Positions 2,923 to 27,407 are shown, numbered from the stretch's first letter. The stretch: 64,000 nucleotides of DNA from Tetramitus jugosus (GCA_937625935.1 OW569382.1:62001-126000); one strand, 5' to 3'. The notes: a model not told the origin generated them from the letters alone. Translations and numbers: made by a program.

Positions 2923-4611
2923 TCATCTGACTATAAAGACGTTTGATGCGGGAGCATACCTCTCCAATGCCTGATATACATCTGCTTTTCTGACAGGCTT
3001 AATTAGATAGTTGTCCATACCTGCTTCCAAAGCAGCCGCTCGATCAATCTCTTGGGCATCACCTGATAAGCCGATAATGGGAATGTGGATCAATCGTTGT
3101 TCCGTTTCAAGTCTGCGTATCTGTTTGGTAGCAAGTAGACCATTCATAACAGGCATATTGACATCCATGAAGATAATATCAAAAGTGTGTTCCTGGAAGC
3201 ATTTTACTGCTTCAAGACCGTTGTTTGCAATTGTACAGGTATGTCCCACTTGTTGCAAATAAGCCTTCAACACCCTCTGATTAATAATGTTATCTTCGAC
3301 GACCAAGACTGAGAAACTATTAGGGGCACTGCTGGGTAAAGTTTGTGTTGCTGCCTCCTCTTGTTGGAAGGACAATTGTTCTTCGAGAGAGAGGGGTTTG
3401 GAGCGAATCACACAGTTAAATGTTGTGCCCTTTCCTTTTTCACTTTCAACTTGGATAGAACCCTTCATTAGTTGAACTAACTTTTTGGTAATATACAGAC
3501 CTAAGCCTGTACTTTCGACTGAAGGAGATAGTGATCTAGTCACTTGAGAGAATTGATTGAACAAACGACTTTTCTCTTCAGAAGTCATACCAGGACCTGT
3601 ATCTTGAACAATCAAGGAAAAGTAGGTATGTGTTGCTGTTTTTTGACTCACATCCATACTGAGAGTAATTGTGCCCTGCTTCGTGAATTTAATGGCATTA
3701 CTGAGAAGATTGATAACAACTTGTCGGATTCGAAATACATCACCCTTGCACCATTGGGCTTCTTCAGGGAGAATGCTCCGGATAGTAAGACCTTTTTGCT
3801 CTGCTTGCGGTTTTAGCATCGCGATAGCGTCGAGAAGCGGCTTTTTGATGTCCATGGGAGATTTGGTTAATCGTAATCGACCTGCCTTTAGTTTGGTTGC
3901 ATCAATAAAGTCATCCAGAATCACCTTTTGATGATCAGCACATAGGTGTATCGTGTCCTATGAGTCATTGATATCACTAATTCTCGTGTTCAATCGCTCG
4001 TCCTTAATTCTTAAGCCTTCAATCTCTTTGACGTTTCCTTTCGCAACGTCGGTCGTACCATAAATGACAAACAATGGATTTCGAACCTCATGACACACTT
4101 CGGCGACTAAATTGGCTTGCATTTGAAGCAAATTATCCCGTTGTTTAATCTTTTGCTCATATGATTCCTGAATGGCAGCCAGATGTGCTTCCTCTAGTTT
4201 ACGTATTCTCTCCTCTGTTTGTTTTCGCTCTGTTAAGTCTCTTGTGACTTTGATAAAGCCAATATGCTTCTGATTATAGATAATAGGAGTAATGACAACA
4301 TTGGCCCAAAATTTTGTCCCATCTTTTTGAACTCTCCAATTTTCATCTTCAAATCGACCTTGTTCTTTTGCCTTTGCTAGTTCATAGTCAGGATAGTGGT
4401 CTTCAACTGCTTGCGCAGGATAAAATTTCTTGAAGTTTTGACCAATTATTTCATTCAGCGTATAACCTTTAATTGCTTCTGCACCCTTGTTCCAAGTTTT
4501 GACATAACCTTCTGGATCCAGAACGATGATGGCATAGTCTTTAATGGAATCGATGCTCAATTCCAAAATTTTCATTTTCTCTTCATTGCAAATCTCTGAA
4601 AGGTTCTTCAT
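2923..4611 (-). pseudogene. Hybrid sensor histidine kinase (PAS-HisKA-HATPase_c-REC) interrupted by one in-frame TAG at 3958-3960
   Basis: PAS/PAC (DYAIIVLDPEG...WNKGAE...KDGTKFWANV...TRDLTERK), H-box HEVRNPL, N-box NLLSNAIKFT, G1 DTGPGM, G2 GLGL, and REC (VVEDN, DVNMPVMNG, KP). The two track ORFs share one frame: INDS*DTIHLCADHQKVILDDFID. Confidence 0.85.
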
Positions 4612-16367: not shown

Positions 16368-17780
16368 TTAAGTCTGCGAGTTGCTGCCTTGAGTTGGTTC
16401 GGAACCTTCGGCGATGCTCGAAGGAGATGGCCTTGTCTCTGTGTACTGCTTAAAGGCGTAGTGATCGTTCAATAACTGAGTGAAGGTTGTACGAATATCA
16501 ATATTCTCAGTTCCTGATCTTTGTTCTTTCTCTGTTTCTTTGGCGTTGAACACAAGCTTCCAGTCTTGATCTTCATTTTGTTCGATTTCAGTTTGCTTCT
16601 CATCCTTTTGTTTTGTTGGTTGTCCTAGTTGTTGCACGTTTGCAAAATGTTCTTCGAGCATGGTCATGTACATGTCATGCCCTTGACCCAAAAGCTCATC
16701 ACGTGCCTGTCTTTTCTGCTGTTTGATGGTTGCAGTTTTAGCTATGGGTTGTGGTGCGCTTACCACAGACGCTGGGATGAACTCACCTCTTAAGAAAAAT
16801 AATTCATTTTGTACAATCTCCTGCATCAGACTATTCACTGTTCGTCCCTTAAAGTTTTTGAGCAAAGATACTGCGGCGAGCCAAATGATGTCCATTCGAG
16901 CTTCTTCATATGACGACTCACTATTCGTGTCGTTTTCCCTGGGAATACTACTCTGGTGAGTATCGCCACTGTCCGTACTATCAGGTTCTTGCTTGTTTTT
17001 GAGAGTGAGAAACGACATGTTCAAAAATTGATTCCACTCCCAATACTTGCTTTCCTCTTGCATTAGAGATTTCAATTGATTCAACTGAACAAAACAAGTG
17101 CACAGGTACTTTGGAAACATAAGTCTGTTCTGAATTGATTCTCTCATCAATTCATGATTCGTCATTCGCTTCTTAAACAAGGAGAGGCACTTGTGGTTCA
17201 AGTCAACGCACAGTGTTTGATCGAGAAACGGAAAGTAAACTTGACTCTGGTAATGAAGTTTTCTGTTGGATCCTCTTTTTTCGTCCAACGTATCAAACAA
17301 GTTCAATTGATAAGAATGAACGGATGATTGCTCTTGTGGTTCTGTTTCTTCTTTGTCAGTCTTCTCTTGATTCACCCAATTACTCTCAAAGGATTGAGTT
17401 TCATTGAGCATACTGATCAAGTAGTTATGACTCGTGATCAACAGAGTATAGTATTGAATGTGAACTTGCTCCAGGAGTTCATTCAATTCGTTGATCATTC
17501 TGTTTGTTTGTAAGCTTCGCATTACATTGGGTTCAAACACCTTATCAAACAGATTGACAAGGGCAATGTTATCAACAATGTCCAGTCTCGTTCGATACAA
17601 GGTTCTCTCAATTTGAGTTCTTTGTTTTTTGTAAAGAACTCCTGCATTTATTTTTTTCTTGACCTTCTTCTTTGTCTCCTTGATTTCTTGGTCATAAACA
17701 TCAAAGAACTGGAGATCATCACTTTGAGTGCATTGCTCACATACGCGAAAAAGAACCTCTTGCCAATTCTCCATCAACAT
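16368..17780 (-). CDS. Hypothetical protein (470 aa)
   Basis: Long ORF converging on ISWI; no family recognised. Confidence 0.7.
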   Translation of the reverse strand: MLMENWQEVLFRVCEQCTQSDDLQFFDVYDQEIKETKKKVKKKINAGVLYKKQRTQIERTLYRTRLDIVDNIALVNLFDKVFEPNVMRSLQTNRMINELNELLEQVHIQYYTLLITSHNYLISMLNETQSFESNWVNQEKTDKEETEPQEQSSVHSYQLNLFDTLDEKRGSNRKLHYQSQVYFPFLDQTLCVDLNHKCLSLFKKRMTNHELMRESIQNRLMFPKYLCTCFVQLNQLKSLMQEESKYWEWNQFLNMSFLTLKNKQEPDSTDSGDTHQSSIPRENDTNSESSYEEARMDIIWLAAVSLLKNFKGRTVNSLMQEIVQNELFFLRGEFIPASVVSAPQPIAKTATIKQQKRQARDELLGQGHDMYMTMLEEHFANVQQLGQPTKQKDEKQTEIEQNEDQDWKLVFNAKETEKEQRSGTENIDIRTTFTQLLNDHYAFKQYTETRPSPSSIAEGSEPTQGSNSQT

Positions 17781-17945
17781 GATTTGTTTACGATCTCATT
17801 GAGGTCGTTTTTTTTGTCACCACAACACATCGCAAAAAAACAAGAAATTTGTTCTCGCACACCCACTCACAAAAAAAAGTTTAAGAAAAATTGAGCAACC
17901 ACAAAGGTTGTTTCATTTTGCACAAACAATAATAAAAACTTTATT

Positions 17946-19044
17946 TCAGTTCTGCTCCTTTTCACAGTCGATTACAGTGAACTCGGAAACAACATTGAAA
18001 TCCTTGCTCCTTTCTAAACAAATTTCATGGTCTCCTTCAACGTAAAACAGTTTCACATCACCGTCAACAATCTCCTTCGCTTCAACGACGAGTTCATCAA
18101 ATGAACTACAAACAACTTTCCATTTTTTCTCGCCAAATCGAAGGAACAAGCATTTCTTATTCAATTCATCACCTATATCACCACTGCCTCTCTTGATCAA
18201 CTTTGTACAGAGTTGAATTAATGCTGCATATTCTTTTGTGACATTCATCATCTCTCTTTGGTTGCTAGCATAATTGATACACGATTTTGCTTGCTCCGAT
18301 GCGATAGAGTTATTTCTAAAAATCGATTCTTCATATCTTTTGTTTCTATTTAGTGCCTGGCTTGATTCTACAATATCGTCAGATAATTGAGAGACATCAG
18401 ACACCATTGTTGATGTACTATAACACAATACATTTTCGTCTTCAAGTAACAGGACAAAAGCTTCATCAAGAGTGGATTCACATTCACAAAAAATTCTCCA
18501 TTGATCGTGGGGCCAAGGAATAATCTCACCTTCACCTTCAATCCCCAGAGCATCCTTCGGTATGTTCAACGCTTTGACCGGTTTTGGTAATTTAGTAGTT
18601 TCCTCCCCACGCCCGAATATAGATTTCAGGGGGAAGAGAATATCTTGAATTTTTTCTCTTTGATCTTCGTACCTCGCCAGTTCAATGCTGCTAGAGCAAC
18701 GGCTTTGTTATTGATCATCAGTACAATCTCGTCCCCATTTTCAACATCATCTGCATCATTGGTGATGGTTTTTCTCCACGAAGAAAAAGCTGTAGATATC
18801 TTCTTCTTATAATCAGTCGCGTCTCTCTCTGGAAATCCCTTTTTAGCCATCTCTTCTCCAATACGGAACGTATGTCCCTTCACAACGGCTCTAATCGCAG
18901 CTTCAACCTCCGAGTGGTGTAGTTAGGGCCTCTTTTTCTTTTTTCTTCTTGTGAGGACTGGATAGTTGATTGTCTTTTCGAAGGACTCTTAGATGCTGTG
19001 TTGCTCTTCTCCTTCCCTTTCTCCTTGGTCTTCCCTTTGATCAT
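17946..19044 (-). pseudogene. Harbinger Myb/SANT (trihelix)-like DNA-binding gene with two apparent frameshifts (~18915, ~18652)
   Basis: Reconstructed: MIKGKTKEK...KRKRGPNYT / HSEVEAAIRAV...IGEEMAKKGFPERDATDYKKKI...WRK / KIQDILFPLK...WPHDQW...CEKEQN. The ATG overlaps the 3' end of the transposase gene. Confidence 0.65.
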
Positions 19045-20278
19045 CTATTGTGGTTGTTTGGTTTTCACAAACCCGGGAGAATTTTTGCCTGAGATGCTCA
19101 TCAAAATTCCCAACGGATTCGGGGGTGCGAATCGGATGTTGTTGTAAAAATCTATTCGTCAAACATGCACAAACCATTGCTACAACTGGCAATAATGCGA
19201 TATTATAACGAAACCGGGAGGCCAAAATCTCATAGCGCTTGATAAATCCGATTGTACATTCGACAATCACGTGCTCCACTTTTTGGAAATGTGAAAGTAA
19301 ATCGTCCTCCTTCAAGTCATCAGGCGTCACCAATGATAACCCAAGATCCTTCGCTCGGAATCCTCCGTCAGCACAAAGTTTTTTCCCTTCTGGTAAAAGG
19401 GATATGATGTTGGATAATGACAAGATTAGTTGGTCATTTGATGAGCCACGATAACCAACAGACATGTGAATAATATTACCACAGCGATCGACAGTGATTT
19501 GACCAATGATGGCGTGTCCCTTGTCTTTCCGATAATACCGACTTTGGTCATATCGTGTCCGACCAACCTTGAAATGTGAGTGATCCACAGATCCCACTGT
19601 ACCAAGAAGGGGATGTGGACTGTTCCAGTTCCGAGGAATTTTAATGGTGTCCCTTTCAGTAACAAAAATGGCCTTGGAGTACCCAAAGTTTACTTGAATG
19701 GCAGAAAGTTTACATGATTGCCTGAGGATCATTAAACATGCAAGTAGACGATTGGCTGGAGAGAGTCGGTTCGTATATGGTGTCTTTCTCTTTCTTTGGA
19801 TGGACTGAGATAAAAAATGAGCATTTTTTGGAGCCATTATTTTCTCCTTTGTTCTTTCAAGAAGTTCCAAGAAGTCTTGATGAGACATACCAGTGTATGG
19901 TATGAAAAGATGAGGTGTCTCACTCAAAATTGAATAGAAGTCCTTTCGAACGATCAATTTCTTCCTTTTTCTCAAGAAAGAATTGCCTTTGCCAATACCT
20001 GGTAATGTTGCCTTTTGAAACAACTTCTTTACTTTATTTGTTGGGTGTGGTAGTTGAATTAGTAGTGGTGGTGGTGTTCTTGATAAGATGTGAAGTATGT
20101 ATTTGGTATTTTTTGATAATGGTTGTCGTTGTTGTTGGATTAATTGTCGTAGATATTTCATGTCTTGTGATAATGAATGGAGTTGAAATGATATGATTGT
20201 GTCAGTATGAATGGATTCGCTGAATAGACTATTCGATGTTTGTGGTGGTGGAGGTAGATGTAAGAGTATATTTTCCAT
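18989..20278 (-). CDS. PIF/Harbinger (DDE_Tnp_4, HARBI1/ISL2EU-like) transposase
   Basis: HTH region 'YTGMSHQDFLELLE...LSPANRLLACLMILRQ'. Catalytic D (GSVDHSH), 'GSSND', D (LCADGGF) and E (VIVECTIGFIKRYEIL). First ATG at 20278; the track ORF opens at 20395. Confidence 0.9.
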   Translation of the reverse strand: MENILLHLPPPPQTSNSLFSESIHTDTIISFQLHSLSQDMKYLRQLIQQQRQPLSKNTKYILHILSRTPPPLLIQLPHPTNKVKKLFQKATLPGIGKGNSFLRKRKKLIVRKDFYSILSETPHLFIPYTGMSHQDFLELLERTKEKIMAPKNAHFLSQSIQRKRKTPYTNRLSPANRLLACLMILRQSCKLSAIQVNFGYSKAIFVTERDTIKIPRNWNSPHPLLGTVGSVDHSHFKVGRTRYDQSRYYRKDKGHAIIGQITVDRCGNIIHMSVGYRGSSNDQLILSLSNIISLLPEGKKLCADGGFRAKDLGLSLVTPDDLKEDDLLSHFQKVEHVIVECTIGFIKRYEILASRFRYNIALLPVVAMVCACLTNRFLQQHPIRTPESVGNFDEHLRQKFSRVCENQTTTIDDQREDQGEREGEEQHSI

Positions 20279-20375
20279 GTGGTGATGTTCTTCATTTTTG
20301 ATGGTCCTATTGTTGAGAATCTCCGTTGGACGATCCAATTTCTCCGATTTCACGAAAAGTCGTATTACACGAAAA

Positions 20376-20912
20376 ATGTCAGTTGCACCCAACACTGTTC
20401 ATGCCGATGGAGAGCACACCGAAAGATCAGATGATGAGATCAAAATGATCAACCTCATCTGTGAACAATTTATTACAAATATGCAGAGGTATTTTAATAT
20501 AGGTGTTGGTATCACTCTGTATTCAGAGTCACCAACATTCTATAACGTTTGCTGGTCAACAGCTGGTCAGAATCGCCAGCACAAATATCCTCTCTATCTG
20601 TTGCGCGAGATTGCCCCTCTTGACTATGATGAAGATACCAATAAAATAGTCTCGGTCGAAGGTGCAAAAAAATTTTTGGTCAGCGGGTTGAGTGATGGCG
20701 CCTCCTCCAGTCGGGACTTGAGGATTTTCATGGCGGTAAAATTTCTTGAAAGCAACGGTTATGATGCATCGTCTTTTATTGATTTGAATAGATATTGGCG
20801 ACTCCAGCAATTTCATTCATTTTGTTGCCATATTAACCAACTGGTTCTTGGTTGTTCCATTGGAAATCCGGGTACCTTTTTTTTACGAAAGTGTCGGCAT
20901 CCGTTTATGTGA
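20376..20912 (+). CDS. Unknown transposon-borne ORF3, divergent from the transposase
   Basis: Alignable along its length with the element-2 ORF (SESPxFYNxxWSTxGQxRxHKYPL; RDLR...FLE; WRLxQ...GxPGxFF). Confidence 0.75.
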   Translation: MSVAPNTVHADGEHTERSDDEIKMINLICEQFITNMQRYFNIGVGITLYSESPTFYNVCWSTAGQNRQHKYPLYLLREIAPLDYDEDTNKIVSVEGAKKFLVSGLSDGASSSRDLRIFMAVKFLESNGYDASSFIDLNRYWRLQQFHSFCCHINQLVLGCSIGNPGTFFLRKCRHPFM

Positions 20913-21681
20913 AGTACTACAGAGAAAGGGTGGTTGGTGATGATGGTTCGTTTGTTGATCAAGTTGTACGAGAGATTGTGTCAATGATAAAAAATCATAA
21001 TAAAATGTAATAAATTGTTTTATTGCTAAGTACTTGTGTTGTTGTGTGCGAATTGATCCCAATGAAACAAGTGACGATGATTTTGAACGGAGGATAGGTG
21101 TTCATCAGTGTAATATTTATTGTTCACCGTAATTTGTTGTGTCATCGTAATGTTGGTTGTGGTGACGATGTTGGCCGTTGTTGATGAATTTATCATTCAA
21201 TATTTCATCACATGAGTATTGCTCAATGTTGTGTCCACGTTAGTGTTTGTTTGTCGGTGGTGTGGTGGGAAATGTGATTATACAGGTCACGTTCGGTGGG
21301 GAAGAGATCTTTCTCCATCTACATGCTGTTAGTTCATGGTGTTGGTTGTTTCTTCTAGGTACTTCAGTATTGTTGGGTTGAATAGTTGATTCTGCAGCTG
21401 TCATTTTTGGTTGAGGATTTGTGGTTGTGATGTGTGAAGCTGTTTGTTGGTGTTTGATTTGGTTTGGTTTGGTGAAAATGGAACGGTTTTTGGGTGCGAC
21501 TCAAATGCCATACAAATTGTTTATTCTGTGTTGCTACCACAAAAAAACGACCTCATTGAGGGTTTTTCTTTTTACGACGAAGCACAAACCAAAAAAACAT
21601 CCTGGTTGTGTTTGCAAATTTTTTGATTTGTGATGCGCCAACAAAACACAAAAACTGTTTCCTTTTGACACAAACAAAACT

Positions 21682-22335
21682 TTATTTAATAAAAATGGTG
21701 CAATCCTCTTCAATTGTCTCAAAGTCTCTCTCATCTTGAACAACGATTTGAACACCATTTTTTTCGTAGTATAGGTCAACGAGCCCATCATCATTCATCC
21801 CACATGCCAAACATTCAAGATCACGAAAACTCTGCACCTTCACGTATTTTGTTAATGTTCCATTTTTCAGAAACACTTTCTTCTCATCCTGATAGTCCAA
21901 ATCAGTCAGTTTTGCCAATGCATGTCGACACATCTTGAGCAAGGATGCATATTCTTTAGTTTCATTTAACATCTGTACTTGATTCGAAGCGTAACTCACA
22001 TATGAAAACGCTTGTTCTTTGGCCACATCATTGTTTCTTGTAACGGCCATTGGATACTTATCATTCGAAGATAGAGACGATTGGCTTTCTTGAATACTTC
22101 CAGCAAGTTCATCTTCATCATTGGCGAGAACCGTACTGGTATTTGCGAGGATATTTTCGTCTTCGATTAACTTGAGGTATGCAGAAAATAATGGATTATC
22201 TTCTTCAATCCATGCTCTGACTTGATCATGTGGCCACGCAATAGGTATACGCTCACCTTCATCACCTTTAGCATCACCCAAAGTAACAACGTCTCCAGCA
22301 GGCTTGGGAATACAGGTACTATCTTTTCCATTCAT
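21682..22335 (-). CDS. C-terminal part of the Myb-partner protein, element-2 homologue of 17946-18569
   Basis: Shared WPHDQ, EDENxL, ESxxxLxxNxxY, NNxxAxEQA, YASNQ and TKEYA motifs. Confidence 0.65.
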   Translation of the reverse strand: MNGKDSTCIPKPAGDVVTLGDAKGDEGERIPIAWPHDQVRAWIEEDNPLFSAYLKLIEDENILANTSTVLANDEDELAGSIQESQSSLSSNDKYPMAVTRNNDVAKEQAFSYVSYASNQVQMLNETKEYASLLKMCRHALAKLTDLDYQDEKKVFLKNGTLTKYVKVQSFRDLECLACGMNDDGLVDLYYEKNGVQIVVQDERDFETIEEDCTIFIK

Positions 22336-22424
22336 ATAAATGGATTGTAACTAAACGGTCATAATGAGAGAAGTGATGAGGAAATAAATAATATTAATCA
22401 AATTTGTGAACTTTTTCCCATACA

Positions 22425-22856
22425 ATGCTGCAACGTTATCACATTGGTATCGAGATCAGATTTTTTTCCGAATCTCCGAATTTTTATAATCTTGTTTGGT
22501 CGACCTCCGGTCAGGATCGGAGTCACAAATATCCTCTTTCATTGTTGGAAGATGTTACTATTTTTAGTGTAAGGGAGTCCGCGCTATTTGTCGATGTCGC
22601 GGTTGCTGAGAAATTTGTCAAACGAACATTGGATGACGCGACAAATGCCGAGCGAGATCTGAGATTGGCAATTGCCCTTGACTTTTTGGAGAGAGAAGGA
22701 CGAGAAATATATGGTTTGGTCGACCAGAACAAGTGGTGGAGACTGTATCAATATTTCTCTTTTATGTGTGCATTGAATGATGCTACACACGGACTTGCTC
22801 TCGGTTCGCCAGGAAGCTTTTTCTGCCACAAGATAGGAGCTTCTGTCTTTGCTTGA
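22425..22856 (+). CDS. ORF3 homologue in element 2 (5' end frameshifted or truncated)
   Basis: Homologous to 20376-20912. Upstream 'NERSDEEINNINQICE' (~22362) matches 'TERSDDEIKMINLICE' in another frame. Confidence 0.7.
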   Translation: MLQRYHIGIEIRFFSESPNFYNLVWSTSGQDRSHKYPLSLLEDVTIFSVRESALFVDVAVAEKFVKRTLDDATNAERDLRLAIALDFLEREGREIYGLVDQNKWWRLYQYFSFMCALNDATHGLALGSPGSFFCHKIGASVFA

Positions 22857-23933
22857 TATTATCGGAATAGACTGTTTGACAAGAGCCAAAAGCGATGGAA
22901 TAGAGAAACAATAGAAGAATTAGAAATAAAAATTCGACAAAAATTGTAATCATTTTTATTCTTTGTTTGTGTTGTTTTGTGTTGTTTTGTTTGTGTTTGT
23001 TTTGTTGAATCAGAAACAGTTTCTGTGCGCAACGTTTTTTTTGCACAAACACTCTTTGTTTGTGTTATGACAACAAAAAGAAAAACCCTCATTGAGGTTG
23101 TTTGATTTTCTTACTCAACAAAAAGAGAGAAAATTTGGTGGAACAAAAATTTCCAACAAACTGCTCTCAACACAACAAAAAAAAGAATGTAGCAAACAAC
23201 ATCTCTGGACAACAACCCATTTACTTTTAGGAGAACAATGTTTGGTCTGTCACCATCAACACTCCAAATAGTGTACAGTTCTCTACCTTCGAACACAACA
23301 CTCACACACCATGTCACACTATTGCCAGATATTGAGAGGAAAAACAATCTTGCATGCCATTTGTGTAACCAACAGCAAAAGAAAGAGTAGAACAAGAAAT
23401 AAATCTACACATCATTTAAGAACAGCTTTGATTTTTTCTTGTTCCAATCGATGTTTATTGAAAGAATTCTACAAGAACAACCAATCATATACACATTAAA
23501 GCTAGAGGGGCTATAGAGATTCCAAACTGGAACGTCCCTTCCTTGATACAATTGATATGAGACCCACATTAACGCTAGTTGTCGTATCGTGACACACAAA
23601 CAATCTGTAATTATTCCCAGTGGAACAGTCAGTGTCTGCTCTACGAGCATTCACAAATCGACATCAGACATTCTGCTTTTGAACTCCAGACATGCTCTTT
23701 TCTCCCACAGATCAAGTTACTAAACAGCAAATGGAGCAAAAAAAAGAACTGAGGTTTTCGTTTTTTACTGGTGGAATCACACACAAATACAAATCGGGCT
23801 AACTTTTGTGATTTTATGTTGGGTTGTTGTTCATTCCATTTCACGAGACACAACATTTTTTATGATTTGACGAGCTTATTTTCTTGGCGCGTAAAATGTT
23901 TTTTTGCCTTGAATTCTTTAAATAAATAACTTG

Positions 23934-24163
23934 CCTTATGACAATAGGTAATAACACTTGATCCGGTTGGAAGGCCTGATCTTTTTCCATGCTGGGTTGG
24001 GAGTTGATCTGGACTATTAATTGTGCTTGTTCTTGCTCTGTCCTTACGACAATAGGTAATCACTCTGGGTTCAACAGGTGCACCAGAAAGAGTGATACAT
24101 TGAGACTTGTCTGAATCATTTGTTATCCTTGTGTCCTTACTACAAAATGTAATCACGCTGGAT
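23934..24163. repeat. Three ~30-bp degenerate direct repeats (ccttaYgacaataggtaatMac)
   Basis: Copies at 23934, 24042 and 24135 (spacing 108 and 93 nt). They read VIT(Y/F)C(S/R/H)K in the minus-strand ORF 23860-24189. Confidence 0.55.
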
Positions 24164-24184
24164 ACGCTCTCCAGGTGTACAATT

Positions 24185-24560
24185 CCCAATATCGTGATAA
24201 GTCTTCCACTGTGTGACTTTAAGGATCCACATCCGATATTCGGAACATCCTTCTCAGTAGATCATACTCATATGCGTGTTGGTCAAGGTACGAACAAAAA
24301 AGGCTATATAGGGCAGACAAGGGACACGCCATTATCGGACAAATCAACTGGTCATTGCACGAACCACGATATCCTACACTCATATGAACGATATTCCCTT
24401 GCCTATCAACAGTGCAATGACCAGTTGATCCTCTCTCTTTCGGGTCTACTCTCATTATTACCTGAAAATGTAAAGATCTGTGCAGATGGAGGATTCTGAG
24501 CACCCAATAACTATTGTAGTTAATTCTGAGGATGACTTTGAAGTCATGACGACCGGAACT
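24185..24560 (+). pseudogene. Degenerate Harbinger transposase fragment with internal micro-inversion
   Basis: PHPIFGTSFSVDHTHMRVG, KGHAIIGQI, inverted TVDRQGNIVHMSVGYRGS and CNDQLILSLSGLLSLLPENVKICADGGF* all match the element-1 transposase. Confidence 0.85.
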
Positions 24561-24723
24561 CAACTGAATGTCCTCCTCCTCCTTGTGATCCTCTTTTTAT
24601 CAACAAATTTAAGTTGTGCAAAATAGAATGTCCAAAACACCATCCACAAATTTTATTCACATAAACTGCCAACGTAATTTTTATGATTGGCCAAAGCTCA
24701 AGACTTGAAAATCAAAAAGAGAG

Positions 24724-24797
24724 TACAGACGGCGGGACTCGAACCCGCAACCCCCGGCTCCGTAGGCCGATACTCTATCCAATTGAGCCACGCCTGC
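24724..24797 (-). tRNA. tRNA-Arg(ACG)
   Basis: GCAGGCG/CGTCTGT acceptor stem, TGGCTCAATTGG A box, TCGGC-CT-ACG-GA-GCCGG anticodon arm, GGTTCGAGTCC B box, downstream T tract. Confidence 0.95.
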
Positions 24798-27334: not shown

Positions 27335-27407
27335 TGCGGGTTGTGAGGATCGAACTCACGACCTTGGATTATGAGACCTACGCGACTACCAGCTGCGCCA
27401 AACCCGC
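27335..27407 (-). tRNA. tRNA-Met(CAT), elongator type, with D-stem and anticodon-stem defects
   Basis: GCGGGTT/AACCCGC acceptor stem, CTCATAA loop, GTGAG-TTCGATC-CTCAC T arm, T6 terminator. Apparent extra T in the D stem and missing T in the anticodon stem. Confidence 0.85.

Follow-up and report, generated by a model that had tools for sequence, protein, structure and literature searches.

A decayed tandem array of three Pangu-like transposons joined at single ATT triplets in Tetramitus jugosus

Within the PHIS superfamily of transposons (PIF/Harbinger-ISL2EU-Spy), canonical PIF/Harbinger elements have TWA as their target site duplication (TSD), and NuwaII targets C/TNA/G (PMC4482050). In the Pangu group the TSD is ANT, with single families duplicating ATT or AWT (Han et al. 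2015, PMC4482050); these elements are about 3.5 kb long, carry a second open reading frame (ORF) without motif and end in terminal inverted repeats (TIRs) of 11-40 bp that usually start with AG or GG (PMC4482050). A 9-bp target preference of PIF/mPIF is mentioned, as a cited result, in a passage of PMC6327408. An insertion that keeps its target also makes a second one, so that tandems with the duplication at their junction arise readily (McGurk and Barbash, on the P element, hobo and R1, 10.1101/158386); in those data the fit to the preferred motif is closer at tandem junctions than at single insertions (10.1101/158386). IS30 has a dual specificity: it targets palindromic hot spots as well as inverted repeats of its own (PMC9333248). 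Here we describe a stretch of 64,000 nucleotides from Tetramitus jugosus (GCA_937625935.1 OW569382.1:62001-126000; hereafter the window, in whose numbering positions are given), in which three decayed elements of related families, E1, E2 and E3 (families F1, F2 and F3), lie end to end. The best explanation, on balance a probable one, is that Pangu-like cut-and-paste transposons of the PHIS superfamily inserted successively into the same A-W-T target.

By their described features, namely duplication, ORFs, size and TIR length, the elements appear to fit the Pangu group. They share with it the A-N-T duplication, a DDE_Tnp_4-type transposase without other strong domain, a motif-free second ORF, a similar size (3.75-3.8 kb here against about 3.5 kb) and TIRs within 11-40 bp. 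They differ in TIRs that start with GAGG rather than AG or GG, a weak criterion given the word "usually" in the Pangu description, in carrying a third conserved ORF (ORF C), and in an extended flank preference and tandem stacking that are absent from that description (PMC4482050). An earlier note on this DNA had called the elements Harbinger-type. This holds at the level of the superfamily, since a DDE_Tnp_4/IS5-like transposase (PF13359), TIRs and a 3-bp duplication (within the 0-3 bp range of PHIS) are all present, but the elements are not canonical, having A-N-T in place of TWA. Canonical elements also encode a Myb/SANT (or MADF) DNA-binding domain in their second ORF; Pfam profiles detected no Myb domain in the partner ORF here (ORF A), which may still hold a divergent Myb-like fold.

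The target motif of maize PIF/mPIF was reportedly CWCTTAGWG in the work of Zhang et al. in 2001. PIF/mPIF and NuwaII resemble the present elements in belonging to the same superfamily and in having a 3-bp duplication centred in a longer palindrome, with C and G flanking the triplet; they differ in the triplet itself (TWA/TNA, against AWT/ANT here), in the Myb/SANT partner, which is not detectable here, and in that the terminal bases of the present elements repeat the preferred flank, which makes the junctions themselves good targets. The dimers of McGurk and Barbash likewise hold exactly one target copy between elements, at a junction that matches the preferred target well, but the partners here come from separate families, with TIRs that differ and ORFs 39-44% identical, their orientations are mixed, the TIR supplies part of the target, and they are fossil copies in one genome rather than population data. 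IS30 also inserts in a palindromic hot spot or beside a resident end, giving tandem structures, but it is a bacterial element of another family that moves by copy-out-paste-in, and recognition of resident ends is putative in our case. For other transposons, the literature already describes how a double insertion regenerates its target. The novelty here is modest and limited to the different families of the partners, to TIR ends that provide half of the target, and to a host clade and a three-gene structure that are new to the Pangu-like group; resting on decayed copies, the case extends known behaviour only modestly. It is nonetheless a clean natural case of target preference and target duplication acting together to stack transposons, with the twist that the end bases of the element complete the preferred palindrome, so that different families can use one site. 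The locus further puts elements that duplicate A-N-T and carry an additional conserved gene in an apparently small, gene-dense genome.

Three junctions on transposon boundaries

The window holds exactly three copies of CTCATTGAG (17795-17803, 21552-21560 and 23088-23096), whose ATT triplets begin at 17798, 21555 and 23091 as the earlier note had read them. This number alone is unremarkable (1.29 expected, and at least three copies in 19 of 100 shuffles); the copies are significant because every one of them falls exactly on a TIR boundary. From left to right the layout is host-CTC / ATT / E1 / ATT / E2 / ATT / E3. The host half-site CTC (17795-17797, plus strand) borders the array on the left and is followed by the first copy of the duplicated ATT (17798-17800); a minus-strand ORF at 16368-17780 has its ATG (17780) 15 bp away from this half-site. 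E1 (17801-21554, plus strand, 3754 bp) and E2 (21558-23090, plus strand, 1533 bp) have different TIRs and share the second ATT (21555-21557), with no further base between their ends (CGACCTC-ATT-GAGGGTT), which bears out the earlier description of these two elements. The third ATT (23091-23093) is the one TSD-length target copy between E2 and E3 (AACCCTC-ATT-GAGGTTG); none of the three triplets is assigned a strand.

E3 (23094-24520, minus strand) is F3-like, eroded and oriented the opposite way; it is recognised by a terminus and a transposase relic. The 60 bases after the last ATT (23094-23153) align with the C-side terminus of an F3 element on contig C4 at a score of 48, against a maximum of 39 in 5000 random window segments and of 22 in 312 segments starting with GAGG, and the transposase relic (24215-24508, plus strand) is colinear with the same F3 element. 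The empty site TCTC-ATT-GAGG, previously reconstructed as host DNA on both sides of a two-element array, is therefore an old junction between host and E3, its right half from 23094 onward being the E3 terminus, and the array is one of three.

The window sequence by itself fits a 3-bp duplication with GAG/CTC termini and a 9-bp duplication equally, and it is the sister copies that separate the two. An F1 copy on contig C17 (L056 4971-8771; G000:C17:202970-206770), 3801 bp long and 80% identical to E1, is flanked as TTC-AGT-GAGGTCG...CGACCTC-AGT-GCG (TTCAGTGAG... / ...CTCAGTGCG), and the F3 element on C4 (L059 5544-8057) as ACC-AAT-GAGGTTG...CAACCTC-AAT-GAG (ACCAATGAG... / ...CTCAATGAG). Both copies have flanks other than those of the array while GAGG and CCTC stay, so the duplication is of 3 bp and GAGG/CCTC are the termini of the element, travelling with it, in agreement with the earlier reading of the ends. 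In all four elements that can be compared, the two ends carry the same duplication (E1 ATT/ATT, E2 ATT/ATT, C17 AGT/AGT and C4 AAT/AAT).

All three families open with GAGG and a T-rich run and close with the complement, and their common terminal design extends to CAACAC-like subterminal bases. A word search with the transposase found only three relatives. One distant relative in another organism (GCA_037189345.1, JBBCKJ010079757.1; L066) has a transposase of 34% identity, ORF A-like pieces and a different gene order; its end at about 4210-4254 reads AAT-GAGGTTTTTTTATTTT, and the terminus and duplication type are accordingly old within the clade.

Target preference across the genome

The clade comprises roughly 15-20 copies or relics in the genome of 26.35 Mb (56 contigs). 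Flanks were read at 16 host half-sites, defined as ends adjoining non-terminus DNA and taken from retrieved loci and from anchored pattern searches, with 34 chance matches of the same TIR pattern as control. At least eight copies, those on C23, C26, C28, C49, C1, C16, C20 and C34, are represented only by coordinates or by 20-nt flanks from the anchored searches; the anchored pattern demands about eight T and misses some ends, such as the right end of E1 and C20:158201. An A-N-T duplication is present at 14 of the 16 half-sites (p=1.5e-13) and at 5/34 control matches (Fisher 1e-6), and A-W-T at 11 of the 16 (p=2.3e-11 versus base composition). By type, ATT or AAT makes up these 11/16, AGT or ACT a further two (both ends of the C17 copy), and TWA is found at 0/16. 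Outside the duplication, TC at positions -2/-1 occurs at 7/16 half-sites versus about 7% expected (binomial 8e-5; control 2/34, Fisher 0.003). The preferred target is a loose palindrome, (C)TC/AWT/GA(G), mostly with an ATT or AAT triplet, whose outer half is repeated by the elements' own first bases, GAGG.

The full palindrome CCTCAWTGAGG has 11 sites in the genome against a control count of 8, and three of the 11 are element-element junctions; the excess of three equals the number of junctions, and the other eight sites match the control. The A-S-T version, CCTCASTGAGG, has 5 sites versus a control of 8, none of them at elements. Exact element-to-element junctions thus number three, two in the present array (C39:79.7-85.1 kb) and one on C35, where ...AAAACCTCCTC-ATT-GAGGTCGTG... 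(CCTCCTC-ATT-GAGGTCG) is followed by relics of transposase and ORF A. Tandem junctions had been expected to recur, and they do to the extent that three of the 11 palindromes are junctions, but just two loci are involved. The further proposal of cassette-array-like growth was overstated for a decayed array in a small family (about 15-20 copies) with junctions at two loci. On C41 (L061 6616-6700; G000:C41:86615-86699) an F1 terminus, GAA-ATT-GAGGTCG, lies 72 bp inside an F3 terminus; this is a nested match of F1 within F3, not one at the terminus.

The genome-wide excess of CTCATTGAGG (56 versus a control of 28) was considered and rejected, 29 of the 30 readable sites being ordinary, mostly coding sequence; only the one on C4 is an element end. 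The unoccupied readable sites lie within open frames of at least 150 codons in 24/30 cases, and 78% of sampled genome positions do so; insertions at coding CTCATTGAGG sites would probably be lost to selection. Copies or relics were also noted near contig ends, at C11:4.5-6.3 kb and 582 kb, C35:6.1-6.6 kb and 449-450 kb, C40:4.2-4.7 kb, C1:5.6-6.6 kb, in the last 4 kb of C4 and at C49:10.5 kb; so many copies no more than a few kb from the end of a contig hint at transposon islands, placed either at the ends of chromosomes or at centromeres.

Explanations for the array

Successive insertion draws on the identity of the outermost TIR bases with the preferred flank, by which an inserted element converts one target into two. 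Each new target consists of one half-site, from the host or from an element, and one element terminus; the claim that insertion recreates the motif on both sides does follow for targets of the form (C)TC-AWT-GA(G). E3 would have come first, at host ...GATCTC-ATT, and E2 and E1 later, in either order, into the junction between host and E3 or into junctions of their own making. Other perfect sites being nearly all in open reading frames, the insertions that survived may have been favoured at neutral sites borne by transposons. All three elements have decayed since, leaving an array that is a fossil and not a growing structure.

Several observations weigh against this account. The flank preference is modest: full CTC stands outside the duplication at just 2/16 host half-sites, and the strict CTC/GAG target originally proposed gives way to a TC/AWT/GA bias, the form in which the predicted bias at other copies was found. 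C at -1 alone is not enriched versus the pattern-matched control (Fisher 0.19), the fully readable host sites of C17 (TTC-AGT-GCG) and C4 (ACC-AAT-GAG) fit on one side only, and three termini have non-ANT flanks (AGG, TCT and TGT). At the C35 junction, the partner on the left is recognised by a TIR-like end alone. No joint in the reads leaves out precisely E1, E2 or the pair, and neither the reads nor the metagenomes yielded an empty or a polymorphic allele. Finally, multiplying the half-site enrichments (6-fold for TC, 10-fold for CTC) over about 20 insertions predicts 0.01-0.27 junction matches, with a probability of at most 3e-3 for three or more; the flank mimicry measured is not fully sufficient for the three seen, and an additional pull is required. 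This could come from cooperative reading of the longer palindrome or from targeting of resident ends, or the gap could reflect a restriction of surviving insertions to transposon islands or a lowering of the measured bias by decay of old flanks.

Active targeting of ends is the strongest rival, though a tentative one. Here the transposase or the ORF A partner would draw the incoming complex to a resident GAGG and T-rich TIR, much as IS30 inserts beside its own inverted repeats, and the 9-bp look-alike would be a consequence and not a cause. The three exact junctions in excess of what half-site preferences predict, the terminal architecture common to all three families and the precedent of dual specificity in IS30 (PMC9333248) argue for it, and the nested case on C41 shows a broader inclination to insert within or beside related elements. 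But binding by a protein is putative, the TC bias in host flanks is present away from resident elements, the mechanism of IS30 differs (copy-out-paste-in), and a restriction to transposon islands could fill the same gap, many copies lying a few kb from contig ends. More doubtful still is the stronger form in which the GAGG/CCTC termini are a built-in landing pad to whose resident ends any sister family is actively directed; it could work through cooperative reading of CCTC-AWT-GAGG or through a protein bound to the resident TIR. If it were true, the clade would stack harmlessly and spare the genes of a compact genome, a selected safe-harbour strategy and the eukaryotic cut-and-paste counterpart of the inverted-repeat targeting of IS30. 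Were insertion at resident ends active targeting, such a safe-harbour mechanism would also be relevant to transposon biology and vector design.

An account without extended preference is improbable. It holds that A-W-T suffices, that the array is a graveyard beside transfer RNA (tRNA) genes with purging elsewhere, and that the common ATTs are a coincidence. Stacked long interspersed nuclear element (LINE) insertions and tRNA-Arg do lie at a distance of 1.6 kb from the array, the genome is gene-dense, as the share of sampled positions in open frames indicates, and copies cluster near contig ends. However, a region of a few kb offers dozens of AWT sites, among which three zero-spacing terminal matches at two loci would be improbable; the TC flank bias is significant, and the excess of CCTCAWTGAGG equals the junction count.

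It is very hard to credit an assembly artefact in which two elements were joined at a short repeat. The contigs built from short reads do break at 17802, just as E1 begins with a TIR that has further copies in the genome, but in an independent run, X5 (probably from the sample used for the assembly), Logan contigs spanning 20322-21684 and 22519-23290 run through the junctions at 21555 and 23091 and show no difference, and an arrangement of TIR, 3 bp and TIR is biologically expected and recurs on C35. The identical 9-mer at all three window junctions might also suggest that CTCATTGAG is a 9-bp target duplication or a recombinase core between integron- or island-like cassettes starting GTCG... 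and GGTT..., but this is refuted by the C17 and C4 copies, which duplicate only 3 bp while GAG/CTC move with the element, and the sole enzyme is a DDE_Tnp_4 transposase, with no tyrosine or serine recombinase.

Structure and decay of the elements

The C17 copy is the only one found with all three genes open, encoding a partner protein of 373 aa (ORF A), a transposase of 459 aa (PF13359, E=7.1e-17) and a third protein of 228 aa (ORF C) between good TIRs, and is a candidate autonomous element of the clade. A sequence-profile search of its intact ORF A gave no Pfam hit at E<=1 beyond noise, and an NCBIfam scan of the transposase gave no match. ORF C, which has no Pfam match, is kept in F1, F2 and F3 elements and in a 71%-identical metagenomic relative (window 20298-20912 and 22425-22856; L056 7596-8282; L059 6037-6541; L067 218-802).

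E1 is a decayed relative of this copy. Its imperfect TIR of about 29 bp starts GAGGTCGTTTTTTT, and the arms (17795-17814 and 21541-21560, 95% complementary) extend to 17829 and 21527. ORF A (17946-18883, minus strand, without Pfam domain) has lost 1 nt at 18654 and another at 18915 compared with the 373-aa ORF of the C17 copy, and these deletions split it into the pieces 17946-18608 and 18626-18883. The DDE_Tnp_4 transposase (18989-20395, minus strand; PF13359, E=5.7e-17) lacks 36 nt at 19674 compared with the C17 copy, a gap that falls where the C17 transposase weakly matches HTH_Tnp_4. ORF C (20298-20912, plus strand, also without Pfam domain) is shortened by a 1-nt deletion at 20876 compared with the same copy.

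E2 has a perfect 16-bp TIR, GAGGGTTTTTCTTTTT (16/16 bases), within arms at 21545-21573 and 23075-23103 that match at 93%. It keeps the C-terminal two thirds of ORF A (21682-22335, minus strand, 39% identical to that of E1) and a remnant of ORF C (22425-22856, plus strand, 44% identical); the N-terminal part of ORF A, the entire transposase and the start of ORF C are missing. E2 is a transposase-free, internal-deletion derivative of an F2 element, and a transposase-bearing F2 copy is present on C37.

No right end of E3 was found in the window, and a search of 23094-24200 for relics of ORF A or ORF C found none. A terminus-like sequence inside E3, AGA-ACT-GAGGTTTTCGTTTTTTACTGGTGG..CACACACAAA at 23742-23800, has an A-N-T triplet ahead of it and might represent a further, nested relic, the fourth, to which the transposase fragment at 24215-24508 would then belong; no partner end for it was found. 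E3 fades before tRNA-Arg (24723-24797) and the LINE insertions, and with E1, E2 and E3 all decayed, no member of the array is functional. The gap between the end of the transposon stack and the first tRNA gene is 200 bp; tRNA-Arg(ACG) at 24723-24797 and tRNA-Met(CAT) at 27335-27407, both on the minus strand, adjoin the LINE insertions.

Metagenome scans gave no match (0) for host flank plus ATT, and the 14 matches obtained with the F1 TIR signature were all chance, having no transposase or A-N-T flank. A contig from a soil metagenome (run X4) tracks the host ORF at 16368-17780 with about 96% identity (window 17500-17781) and diverges at 17781, right after the ATG and ahead of the insertion site, so that it is uninformative on the empty site. 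Diverged copies of the elements are present in groundwater and soil metagenomes and, together with the X4 contig, indicate that relatives of both the organism and its transposons occur in soil and groundwater habitats.

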